Positions 662 to 5,724 of a DNA stretch of 64,000 nucleotides are shown here, piece after piece (within the stretch, counting starts at the first letter, position 1; every line of letters begins with the position of its first letter). The translations under genes were made by a program, and so were the position numbers. The notes below the pieces were generated by a model, which saw only the letters and a list, made by a program, of their open reading frames with translations, ran no database searches and was not told the DNA's origin. Source of the stretch: Thalia democratica. Its lineage: Eukaryota. Where the stretch lies: contig OZ241831.1 of assembly GCA_965202585.1 (NCBI GenBank), positions 49,910,001 through 49,974,000 of the forward strand. The letters run 5' to 3'.

Positions 662-1588
662 ATAAACTAAAAAACTAAACAAAGTAAGAGAAAAAGAACG
701 TTGTTTAAACTTGAAAAAAATTATTTAGAACAAAGAAAAAAGTGTAAGGGCTTTTATTAAAATATTTAAACTCTATATATAAGTTATAATATTTTAAAAC
801 GCTTAAAACTATATTTTTCTTTACTGAAAGTGTCTAGTTAATAATAACTAATTAATAAAAAAAAGATTGTACAAACCAAACAAATATGATCATAAGTGTT
901 GTTTTCCAAAACCTAGCCATTAGGTCACAATATAGTTTAACCTAACAAAAATTTGTTACCTTAAAAAATACTGTATTAAGTTACTAAAAAAAAATAAAAT
1001 AAAATTCAAAAACACTAACTTGTTACTTAAAAAAGTAATAAATGTACTATGCGAAAAACAAGTATTTAAACTGTAAACTTTTTCTATTTTATTTAATAAT
1101 AATGCAGGCAAAACTTAAAAAGTATTATTAATATCAAATACCAAAGTACAACTGTATGGTTTCAAGATTCATAATTAAAAAGTAAAACTGAACAGCTTTT
1201 AAGAATGAGTAGGCTGAAGCAGTAAGTTTTTTAATTAGTTACTACCAAATGATGAATTTCATTGTTTTGAAAACGAGATAAATCAGTAATAAATCAGTAC
1301 TTCAATAACTTTTGAAACCATAAACCATTTTTCTAATAATTATCAATATTTTACCCAAATAAATACACCTTACCTAAGCGTGTAACAAATAAAGATAAAT
1401 ACAATAATTTAATATTTCAATAGTCAAAATAAACAGTAATTAATATAAAACTAATTAAATATCATTAAAAATGTGTACGTAAGTAAGTACGTATAAATAC
1501 ATAAGTCATATAATTCTTTTAAAACTAAATTATACAAGTTTTATGTATGTACAAACAAGTAATGAAAAAAAATTGAAGGTAAAATATT

Positions 1589-2323
1589 GACTCTCTTGAG
1601 GTAGCCTAGTAAAATATTTTCAAGAGCAACATTTGAGCATCATACGCGTATGCTTGATGTTACACTAGTAAGAGAGACGCTTTTGTGCGTTCGGTCGACT
1701 TGAAGCTTAGGGATTTTATAATGTGAAGGCTTGTATGCATTTAACGAAGAAATCCCTGGACGTCGAGACGGGTAGGCGTCAAGTCGTCGAGGCGGGTTGG
1801 TTGGTGGCAGAGATTCGTTATAGCTTGAGTCGACTGGCCGTCGACTTAAGCTGCCATCGAAAGGCCGTTAAATCGGCCAAAGGTCGTATAGCAGACCTGA
1901 TTGAATGAGTAAGGAGGGAAATTAGAGCGAGAGAAGGCAAGTACCGTCCAAAAGCAGCCATAGAAGCCGGCTCTCGCAAGCAGTAAGCTCTGACATGATT
2001 CAGCCCAGTTAAAAGTACGTTTGAGTGCATATATATGAATGATTGAACCTGTGCATTTGTAAAGGTGAAGCTTCAACCGGGCGACTGAAGCAGGGAAGGC
2101 GAGTTAGAAGAAAGTGCACAGGCGAAAGGCGAAGCACTCAAAATGTGACAGGCAGAGAAGCGGCTGCATCTCACAGTCGCTTTCACGTTCAGAGGTAAAA
2201 TAAAGCAAAGTATTTTGTGAGGGAAGCAGAAGCTTTGAGAAAATAATTTAAAAACATGGGAGGGCCTGTTTTTTCGAAAAGTTGTCGGATGCAATTTTCG
2301 AATGGAAAGTGTAGGAATGGTGG
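1589..2323 (+). ncRNA. Candidate large structured RNA, family unassigned
   Basis: GC-richer than its flanks, with no credible ORF. Many helices: 1591-1597/1670-1676, 1709-1716/1750-1757, 1822-1834/1840-1852, 1863-1867/1874-1878, 1881-1885/1894-1898, 1927-1933/1971-1977, 2020-2028/2134-2142, 2048-2055/2115-2122, 2158-2166/2174-2182. The non-Watson-Crick positions in these stems are G-U on the + strand. Confidence 0.45.
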
Positions 2324-2437
2324 AATATGGAAAGAAAAGATTGAAAAAAAATTCAGCAAAAAAGGCTCCGATTTCGCCCGCGGGCGAAATCGGAGCCTTT
2401 TTTGCTGAATTTTTTTTCAATCTTTTCTTTCCATATT
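2324..2437. repeat. Perfect 114-bp palindrome (57-bp arms, no loop) centred on CCCG|CGGG
   Basis: 2324-2380 is the exact reverse complement of 2381-2437, including homopolymer lengths. Confidence 0.95.
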
Positions 2438-2443
2438 TTTTAT

Positions 2444-2630
2444 AAAGACGCTCGTCGAAAGATGAGCGTCTTTTTTTTTGCTCAATTTTTTTTCAATCTT
2501 TTCTATTCATATTTTTTCAAAGACGCTCGTCGAAAGATGAGCGTCTTTTTTTTTGCTCAATTTTTTTTCAATCTTTTCTTTCCATAATTTTTCAAAGACG
2601 CTCGTCGAAAGATGAGCGTCTTTTTTTTTA
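2444..2630 (+). terminator. Three 75-bp-period repeats, each a 13-bp hairpin with GAAA loop followed by a T-tract (intrinsic-terminator-like)
   Basis: AAAGACGCTCGTC-GAAA-GATGAGCGTCTTT at 2444, 2519 and 2594, each running into a T-tract. The spacers match the right arm of the palindrome. The terminator role is inference. Confidence 0.6.
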
Positions 2631-3178
2631 CCGAAAGTTTTTTTTGGTTCTGGTTGTATTTTTAACAGTCAACTAACTGTATTTATGAAAATAAATTTTT
2701 TCATGTCTTAAGTTTCTAGAGGGTGCCACCGAAGGGTTAGCACCTTTTATTTACCAATTTTTTAACTTTCTTCTTGACTGAACCAATAAAAAATCCCCTA
2801 ACCTAAAACTGATTGATAGTCGCTTAAATATTTTTAATTAATTAGTGTTAAATTTTTATTAAATAAAGCTATAAGCATGATGGTTCAAAGCTTCTTTTTT
2901 AAATCATACAATTAACTAGATATTAATGAACGAACGAATTTGTATAAAGTTAACCCGGGGTTTTAAAATGACAGCCTTTTATTTAGTTTTTTATGTTATA
3001 AATATGGAAATGGTAGTTTATTTAATTATAATAGTTTTTACTAGTATAAAATACAATTAGTACTAAAACGATGATATTTTTGGCAAGGGAAATAAATCGA
3101 AAATTGTTAAAAAAGTTTAACAAATTTCGATACTTGCACTTATCATGTATGTTTTAGTTGATAAATTATTTTAAATTA

Positions 3179-3196: not shown

Positions 3197-5724
3197 AAAT
3201 ATTTTCAATTGCATACAATGTGCTATGAAGATCAAAAATTAAGTAACAGACTTTTGGATTTTCACTTAACTATGTCTATTTTTAATTGGTCATTTTAGTA
3301 AGCGTTTCAAATACAAAATATGATTAAATATTACATTTTGAACATTTTTAAATAGAAATAAATAACGTTCTTGTAAACATTCAATTTTCAAGTATTTAAG
3401 TTCTAGTTGTTTATACATAAGTATTTGCATATTAAATAACTTTTTTTAAAGCCCGTGATTTGAATCTTATTTGCATTGAATTATATTTATTTAATTTTAC
3501 ATACTGAATAGCGTTTTGTGGAAAAATATTCAAGTTGTCTTAATTTTTTTATAAAGGTAAATTACAAAATAAAATTCAACTTTTATTACTAAATGTATTA
3601 AACAGACTTCAATCTACTTTCTAAAAATTTTATTAGAAACGATGATGTTTATTAAAGTTTGAACCTCTATTCGGGGTTTCCCCAAATTTGACAACACATC
3701 CCCTCTAAACCATTTTCGCTATCATGGGCGTAATAAGTAGGGGGATGAAAAAAGTTTTGTGATTGGATACATTATAAAAACTAATCATTTATCAAAAACA
3801 GTTCAAGCTATAAATGGTTTTGGTAAAAAATTACGATTTTGAAACGAACCTGACTTTAAATTGTTTTAAACTATTTGATATTACATACTAACTAGCATTT
3901 TGTAGAAATATATACAAATGTTAAATACATTTACTAAAATAGAAAGCTGAGTCACTTAAAAAAGATAATAACTATATATAACGCGAACAAACTTGATATT
4001 TAGTTGATAAAAAATCCGTATATGTCTTATGCAATACAAAACTCAAAAACCATTAAGAAAACTGACCAGCGTATCCTTGATTACAGTTGGAATTATCCGA
4101 TCTTATACCAATAAGGACTGAAGACTTTTTGTACATTTTGTATGCACCCATCGATCTAGAAATTTATTGATTAAATTTATTTTTTTATTTCATATATAAA
4201 TTTATACAAGTATTATCATTTGGAAATTTATTACTTGTTCCTTAACTTTTAATTGTTATGAAATCGATTGAATTTTATTTTATATGAAAATTTTTAGAAA
4301 CAAACTTAGATTTAGAGAAGCAATAACTTGTCAGAATACTATTTAAATACAATAACCTCTCTCAAATCTATCCACTCTCGTTTTAAATAGACTTCTTAAA
4401 ATACGCAAAAAGTATACTTAATTTAAACCTTTTAATGTACCAACAAATTTGTTGTATGTTTTCAATTAACAACAAAATGCTTTAAAATAATATATTTGAT
4501 TGTCAAAATGTACATCTTGCAAATATTCAGTTGTTTTAACTTTGTAATATTGTTACATTCTCACGTTTAACTACAAAATTTTGCTGACAAATGTGCGTAA
4601 ATTCGCGAGAGTTTACTGTAATGTATATACACTAGCTATATTTAATACTTTAAAAACTTTGACATATTTAACAAAAACATTCTAAAATTAATTTCTAAAA
4701 GATTAACACAGTACAGTGCTTTCTCACTTATCCGGTAACGTTGGGTTATTTTGTAAACTTAATCGGATATTTATATTACGCAATGCACACAATAAAACAA
4801 ACACTAAATTTAATACAGAAAGTCATAAAAGCTTGCAAATGAACAATAAAAAACTTGTTAACTTATTGTGCGCCAAAACTATTATTTAACAATATTAAGT
4901 TTGAGAAAAAAATTTAAACAATGAGGTAACTATAAACTTATTGCCTAGTTGTAAAAATTGATTTTATCGTGTATTTGAAGTAAAACACTTTAAATTTTAA
5001 CTTAAATAAACTGTTAGTGACGCATTTGTACAAGATTTATATCAGCCAGAATGAACCCAATAAAATTTGTAATGAATTACATTCACCTCTCACGAATCTA
5101 CGCACTCATTTGGTTACGCACTCTCATTTAGTTACGTATTTTAGAATTCTTAAACAGTTGTAAAAATAAGACATTTCAAAATTTATAGATTGTATATAGA
5201 GTTTTAATTGTGAAAATAGATAAACGTTTTTTGACTTTTATTTAATCCAATATTTAATTCGGGCATTATCAACAAAGTTGAGATGTTCGTGCCATCAACA
5301 ATAAATAATAAACTCCACCACACGACCAACAACAACAGCATCCGAGACAACGTACGACCAGTTTCGTCCTTATTAGTACTCATCAAGCAGGCGTAGCCGC
5401 GAGAAACTGCTGTTGAGATCATTGTTTATTAACATGATTTTACTTGAAATACCTTTTTTTAGAAAAATAAAGCGCCTTATACAACAACTAAGTGCAAAAC
5501 ACAACAAAAAATATTAAAAGACCTAGGCATTATAAAAATTTGTATTTATCTAGCTCTCATATGTATCTAAATGTACGAAATAATCTATTTCTGAAAAAAA
5601 TAACTATTGGCGCGAGTTAAAATACAAATGTACATTAATATGATTTAATGATTAATGTGATGTAATAGTCTTTAAATAAAGTTTGAGTGTAAATTGTACA
5701 CTTAAAAAAGTATCCAGTTTTTTT

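Follow-up and report, generated by a model that had tools for sequence, protein, structure and literature searches.

What is the GC-richer island that stands amid AT-rich DNA in this part of an 800-Mb eukaryotic genome, and does it code for anything? We address this question for the window, meaning the whole stretch of 64,000 nt that was analysed (C7:49,910,001-49,974,000), and for related copies elsewhere in the genome. A prior reading of the letters, hereafter the sequence-only reading, had noted no credible open reading frame (ORF) in the island, and the GC profile and ORF listing bear this out. The longest ORF wholly inside the island is 76 aa, and one 115-aa ORF on the minus strand extends into the adjoining palindrome. 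Alignment of family members of the cassette described below shows gaps of 1, 2, 5, 7, 8, 10, and 14 nt, indicating that no reading frame is preserved in the family. Rfam searches at gathering score returned zero matches in the 64-kb window or in six family loci, and rRNA genes are absent in these sequences between the start-like and stop-like signals of the cassette. Rfam hits in E-value mode within 1400-2800 were confined to the palindrome and terminators, where they represent generic hairpin look-alikes, with none in 1589-2290.

The island had also been called an orphan, which proved wrong. A 15-mer that discriminates the cassette from true rDNA has 235 exact matches genome-wide, which form clusters on C1, C2, C4, C5, C6, and C7 with neighbors standing 18-70 kb apart. 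Island copies 100% identical to that of the window are found on C7 and on C253 (with a period of 18,374 bp on C253), and copies 97-99% identical on C6. Diverged subfamilies are 85, 83, 80-81, and 74% identical to the window copy, with further ones at ~69-73% recovered in a second search, and some of the other subfamilies are arrayed at 22.5-25 kb spacing. Whole units from three arrays each contain a single GC island, the remainder being AT-rich. A unit of the window's subfamily runs from the cassette through ~12 kb of AT-rich DNA into 1,219-bp repeats whose number varies (about three on C253, as opposed to about 40 in the window). The cassette is present once per 18-70 kb macrosatellite unit, in at least 235 copies on at least six chromosomes. 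This copy number, together with the host rDNA sequence that the copies share, excludes both the laterally acquired insert suggested by the sequence-only reading and a bacterial-type sRNA gene. An exact two-block pattern built from invariant body segments retrieved nothing from metagenome contigs.

Several other features of these repeats were recorded. The 1,219-bp unit forms a ~40-copy tandem array at 14800-64000 and 1-640 of the window, with GC ~0.44 and positive GC skew. Many copies hold an intact 373-aa ORF that occupies 92% of the unit, others being frameshifted (189+193, 241, or 230+234 aa), and a Pfam search with this ORF gave no match. At 5000-5400 of the window, contig depth reaches ~200,000 relative to ~2,000 around it in two DNA runs, an excess of ~100 times, so this stretch is part of a repeat family of very high abundance. 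In two subfamilies, one shared by C135, C282, C701, and C4 and the other at C6:13.1 Mb, two to four additional tandem copies of a ~90-nt segment (positions 168-256 of the island, 1756-1844 of the window) are present, as seen at L012:7882-8757 and L013:8443-9467.

The island was compared with a true rDNA unit from C79, which has a period of ~15.5 kb and was annotated with Rfam for 18S, 5.8S, and 28S. Read on the + strand, the cassette carries a 28S patch, then a promoter-like block and a body of ~620 nt, next a perfect palindrome, and after it a stack of hairpin/T-tract units (Table 1).

Table 1 Parts of the cassette and associated features, with positions in the window unless a locus is named; identity is the mean pairwise value among ten subfamily representatives.
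Feature	Position	Strand	Description or basis	Identity
GC-richer island	~1590-2320	+	GC 0.45-0.49 at 1650-2250 vs ~0.22-0.25 in AT-rich surroundings	
AT-rich upstream lead-in	1514-1588	+	Inter-subfamily BLAST homology starts at 1514-1587	0.52
28S patch, 18 nt	1589-1606	+	Exact match to host 28S (L016:4224-4241), R2 insertion site	0.93
Promoter-like block	1611-1703	+	87% over 93 nt to rDNA 444-536 nt upstream of 18S (BLAST)	0.75
Hairpin-rich non-coding body, ~620 nt	1704-2323	+		0.66-0.77
Hairpin, 13 bp, GTCGAC-containing arms	1822-1852	+	Best-conserved local hairpin; 98% of cells paired in 15 copies	
Helix, 7 bp	2052-2118	+	Closing pair is the only covarying candidate in the body	
T6 run inside body	2268-2273	+	Conserved in subfamilies; columns 733-740 of alignment A2	
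Loop-less palindrome, 114 bp	2324-2437	.	GC-rich hairpin between A-run and T-run	0.78
Three tandem GAAA-loop hairpins, each followed by T9-10 (terminator repeats, copy number variable)	2444-2630	+	TRF: period 75, 3.1 copies, 2398-2629	0.44
Extra hairpin and T-rich run	2722-2752	+	Seen in sequence; counterparts in L010, L011, and L021	
Sequence past terminators				0.22
R2-like element	L040:6229-9859	-	In 28S gene	
R2-like element	L039 (C26:52500-60500)		In 28S gene	

The 28S patch has a sole copy in the window and is the best-conserved segment of the cassette. The promoter-like block was matched to rDNA by nhmmer with a profile of 18 cassettes (E 7e-20), and a core of ~50-60 nt (~1628-1678) is common to rDNA and all subfamilies. 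Its rDNA counterpart sits exactly where the AT-rich spacer gives way to the GC-richer leader, and from this rDNA position alone we presume that the block is likely the promoter/start region for RNA polymerase I (Pol I). A profile search of the true intergenic spacer (IGS) found no second copy of the block. The terminator module resembles the first hairpin after 28S, located 44 nt past the 28S end (nhmmer E 2.4e-4 to L016:5401-5535); the profile homology is weak but significant, and the two have in common the build of a GAAA-loop hairpin plus T-run and the motif 'tcaatttttt..caat'. By sequence match, the 5' block and the 28S patch are of rDNA origin and so, weakly, are the terminators. The body appears to be another matter. 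When it was compared with the 5'ETS, ITS1, ITS2, post-28S, and upstream IGS sequences, the sole outcome was an 18-nt motif of marginal similarity in the 5'ETS, whose score was matched by 7 of 300 shuffles, and the body seems neither clearly related to the present 5'ETS nor demonstrably rDNA-derived. The whole window has nothing in common with the rDNA unit besides the shared block.

Pairing of the U3 snoRNA hinge with the island or with the true ETS was also considered and was rejected, as it was no better than shuffles (14/60 and 30/60, respectively) and the best site in the island is unconserved. In the rDNA unit (L015-L017, C79:1500-27500), genes for U2 and U5 snRNA lie in the IGS together with two for 5S rRNA, all on the strand of 18S-5.8S-28S.

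We propose that the island is probably the body of a host rDNA-derived, gene-less 'mini-rDNA' cassette, most plausibly a non-coding unit of Pol I type. RNA polymerase I would initiate on the + strand, either within the promoter-like block or a short way past it, and would produce a non-coding RNA of ~0.7-1.0 kb, stopping at the palindrome and the hairpin/T-tract stack. The cassette would thereby act as a spacer promoter plus terminator module sited outside rDNA. The sequence-only reading had assigned the island to the + strand and had noted terminator-like hairpin/T-tract units directly after it. Both points are supported: the promoter-like block is oriented like its rDNA counterpart, T-tracts lie 3' of the hairpins on the + strand, and the units following the island are the palindrome and a 75-bp array of 3.1 copies.

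The sequence-only reading favored a large non-coding RNA or ribozyme, in which case function would reside in a conserved fold and the rDNA-like signals would serve only for expression. The helices it listed are present where it placed them: 2020-2028/2134-2142 forms 9 of 9 pairs, 2048-2058/2112-2122 forms 10 of 11, and 2081-2087/2174-2180 forms 7 of 7. The hairpin 1822-1834/1840-1852 forms 12 of 13, and the G-U pairs at 1827, 1804, and 2163 are legible in the sequence. The + strand has a minimum free energy of -229.5 kcal/mol, clearly beating its shuffles (z -4.69), but the minus strand is nearly as good (z -4.16, 20 shuffles each). For copy L011, 74% identical to that of the window, z is -7.07, whereas the true 5'ETS of the same genome gives -0.93 (20 shuffles for the 735-755-nt stretches, 100 for the 5'ETS). 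Hairpin richness is therefore specific to the cassette rather than a general trait of rDNA spacers. Strong folding in two diverged copies speaks for a structured RNA, as do invariant blocks of 15-25 nt set between variable, indel-rich linkers and the retention of several local hairpins in all subfamilies.

Evolution of the helices argues the other way. Among 15 diverged copies from many subfamilies (alignment A2), no covariation was detected in the body helices. The RNAalifold consensus contains 107 pairs, none of which (0/107) shows two-sided changes, and has a covariation term of -0.86 kcal/mol. When 3' partners were re-dealt among the sequences, 276 of 300 shuffles reached the observed percentage of pairing, and the covariation score was 0.069 vs 0.068. 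Slid controls were 34-42% paired, as expected for any structure derived from the same sequences. All changes in the 1822-1852 hairpin are one-sided, four of them wobble-compatible and three disruptive; each of the six changes in the long-range helix 2020-2028/2134-2142 breaks a pair; most subfamilies have lost the outer half (2048-2051/2119-2122) of the helix 2048-2055/2115-2122 by deletion; and 2081-2087/2174-2180 shows a mixture of wobble-compatible and disruptive changes. The single candidate in favor of the fold is the pair 2052/2118, which occurs as UA in 4 copies, CG in 4, AU in 3, UG in 2, and AG in 2, that is, in three Watson-Crick types. The helices of the body persist because the sequence is conserved. 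No ribozyme or non-coding RNA family was matched in Rfam 15, and what was found in its place is essentially a match to rDNA spacer sequence without covariation. We regard a functional fold of the body, as a structured RNA or ribozyme, as quite unlikely to be the reason for the island.

The palindrome, unlike the body helices, is maintained by two-sided changes. In other subfamilies its arms differ from those of the window at 6-20 positions, yet within each copy the arms mismatch each other at only 0-2 positions (4 in one copy). The changes are always strict Watson-Crick complements with no G-T pair, which suggests that the process acts on DNA or else that the palindrome has to function on either strand, as a two-way hairpin/T-tract stop would. 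The palindrome does resemble a hairpin/T-tract terminator read from either direction. A module acting in DNA, whether by stopping transcription from both sides, by blocking replication forks, or as a recombination hotspot, and thereby protecting or driving amplification of the macrosatellite, would make use of such a two-way palindromic hairpin/T-tract together with the stacked one-way set. The terminator/barrier region of rDNA protects or drives tandem amplification, and one cassette per repeat unit was found in every array seen. Consistent with an exchange breakpoint, the recent pair formed by the window and C6:2.42 Mb differs by 7.3% substitutions in the upstream 940 nt (650-1588), by 1.1% in the island, and by 0.7-0.8% in the downstream flank; this drop from 7.3% to ~1% at the first base of the cassette may mark the 28S patch as a breakpoint of recombination or conversion. 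A purely DNA-level role is nonetheless drawn entirely by inference and leaves conservation of the 620-nt body unexplained, and we consider it decidedly improbable.

Is the cassette maintained at all? It could be inert, a relic of rearranged rDNA that merely traveled with the amplification of the DNA around it and is untranscribed, with palindromes kept by DNA-level processes, e.g., arm-to-arm conversion. A DNA-level process of this kind predicts the strictly Watson-Crick, G-T-free arms of the palindrome. The inert relic would also be compatible with the RNA data, as no RNA run was found containing the cassette, although this is not proof of silence. Contigs from one marine metatranscriptome fall only on 134-415, in the 1.2-kb repeat (~94-99% identity), with none on the island. 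In two runs, coverage extends over all of the 6 kb, the AT-rich flanks too, indicating that they represent genomic DNA. Substitution rates in the recent pair are similar in the island and the downstream flank, so added constraint is absent between recent copies and becomes visible only over deeper comparisons, and homology between subfamilies extends into the flanks.

Those deeper comparisons weigh against an inert relic. Across subfamilies diverged by 25-35%, the 28S patch, promoter block, and body are far better kept than the flanks, with identities of 0.66-0.93 for cassette segments (0.44 for the terminator repeats) relative to 0.17-0.52 for flanks overall, a contrast that is inflated in deeper comparisons because AT-rich flanks also align less well. 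BLAST between subfamilies gives 82-83% for the island and 68-70% for the downstream flank. The complete order of parts is intact in every subfamily examined. We therefore view an inert relic as possible, if on the unlikely side.

The 28S patches raise a further question, that of mobility. Most other subfamilies have a second 28S patch 12-20 nt after the terminator T-run, usually inverted, so that inverted 18-mers bracket the cassette. It is seen at the 3' ends of L010, L011, L019, L021, L009, and L023, and its variants include a direct copy in L023, a back-to-back pair in L009, and a copy within the repeated terminator unit in L011. The window's own subfamily has the upstream patch only. At some Pol I terminators, a bound protein brings transcription to a stop immediately downstream of a T-rich release element, and the fixed geometry of T-rich run, short gap, and 18-mer in the cassette may be speculated to be alike. 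The true rDNA terminators of this animal carry no patch, so the likeness remains speculation. Strict upkeep of the 18-nt 28S sequence at the borders of the cassette points to a sequence-specific binding factor.

The patch sequence is also exactly where R2-like elements interrupt true 28S genes in this genome. In some 28S genes the insertion site reads CTCTTGA / CAAATGCC, with GGTAGC lost (a 6-bp target deletion). A 981-aa ORF that encodes a reverse-transcriptase domain (Pfam RVT_1, 5e-34) is present in one R2-like copy, and another is a 1.48-kb 5'-truncated copy. The R2-like 3' end occurs in nine copies genome-wide, 81-100% identical; the rDNA contigs and a single unrelated C6 site account for all of them. 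A link between R2 and the cassette was considered and rejected, as the sequences of the R2-like element and the cassette are not similar, and none of the nine 3'-end copies (0/9) lies beside a cassette. In this assembly, R2 does not use the patches as landing sites.

Could the cassette itself be a non-autonomous mobile element whose 28S patches would serve as target mimics or terminal inverted repeats, either dependent on R2 or similar to mPok of Pokey? The sequence-only reading had suggested the RNA part of a mobile element; nothing was found in support of this, and it survives as a slight chance. The bracketing by inverted 18-mers and the residence of R2-like elements at exactly that 28S site would fit. 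R2 reportedly has internally deleted derivatives (SIDEs) and an HDV-like 5' ribozyme. The cassette resembles R2 and its SIDEs in the 28S site concerned, R2-like elements being present in the rDNA of this genome, but it has no R2-like similarity, ribozyme match, or neighboring R2-like copy. The Pokey/mPok system of Daphnia offers a second parallel: Pokey is a piggyBac-type transposon specific to a 28S site that carries IGS- and ITS2-derived repeats (PMC3849761). The likeness extends to the same 28S region, to captured non-coding rDNA sequence, and to copies outside rDNA (PMC3849761). The cassette differs from Pokey/mPok in lacking transposase, TTAA junctions, and independent insertions, and its 18-mer is intact rather than a split target. 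More generally, no transposase or reverse-transcriptase ORF was found in or near the cassette, the patch represents an uninterrupted target rather than an insertion junction, and the second patch is missing in the window's subfamily. Homology among all copies continues on the far side of each patch, and independent insertions are therefore not seen. A mobile element is very improbable on this evidence.

The rDNA-derived, Pol I-type unit that we favor has relatives of two kinds among known systems. Spacer promoters with proximal terminators, as in the IGS of Xenopus, Drosophila, and mouse, are the source of pRNA and other IGS RNAs. In these modules a second copy of the rRNA gene promoter gives rise to a short non-coding RNA, whose synthesis stops at Pol I terminators, and the cassette may be analogous. 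Spacer-promoter modules sit inside the rDNA spacer, however, whereas the cassettes occupy at least 235 places outside rDNA and have 28S patches and a 620-nt body not found in rDNA. The second kind comprises rDNA orphons, which are dispersed fragments of a tandem family, and IGS-derived satellites, which arise from IGS subrepeats in plants and flies. These share with the cassette the presence of rDNA-derived regulatory sequence away from the nucleolar organiser and its tandem amplification. The cassette is no short IGS subrepeat satellite: here a whole promoter-to-terminator cassette is present, single in each 18-70 kb unit, with its order of parts kept across subfamilies diverged by 25-35%. 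The literature searched contained no description of such cassettes, the nearest systems being spacer promoters, rDNA orphons/IGS satellites, and Pokey (PMC3849761).

If the cassettes are silent, they are an ordinary rDNA-derived relic within repeats. We tentatively raise a further hypothesis, which we think doubtful: that the genome harbors hundreds of gene-less, extranucleolar Pol I units, bracketed by 28S patches and making a hairpin-rich RNA of ~0.7-1 kb, which may recruit nucleolar, Pol I, or patch-binding factors to macrosatellites and might thereby control array silencing, nucleolar tethering, or copy-number expansion in the manner of rDNA. If the cassettes are active, Pol I-type promoter/terminator units would exist at hundreds of places outside rDNA, one per macrosatellite unit, and would provide a natural system for studying rDNA signals out of context, the tethering of repeats to the nucleolus, and the expansion of tandem arrays.
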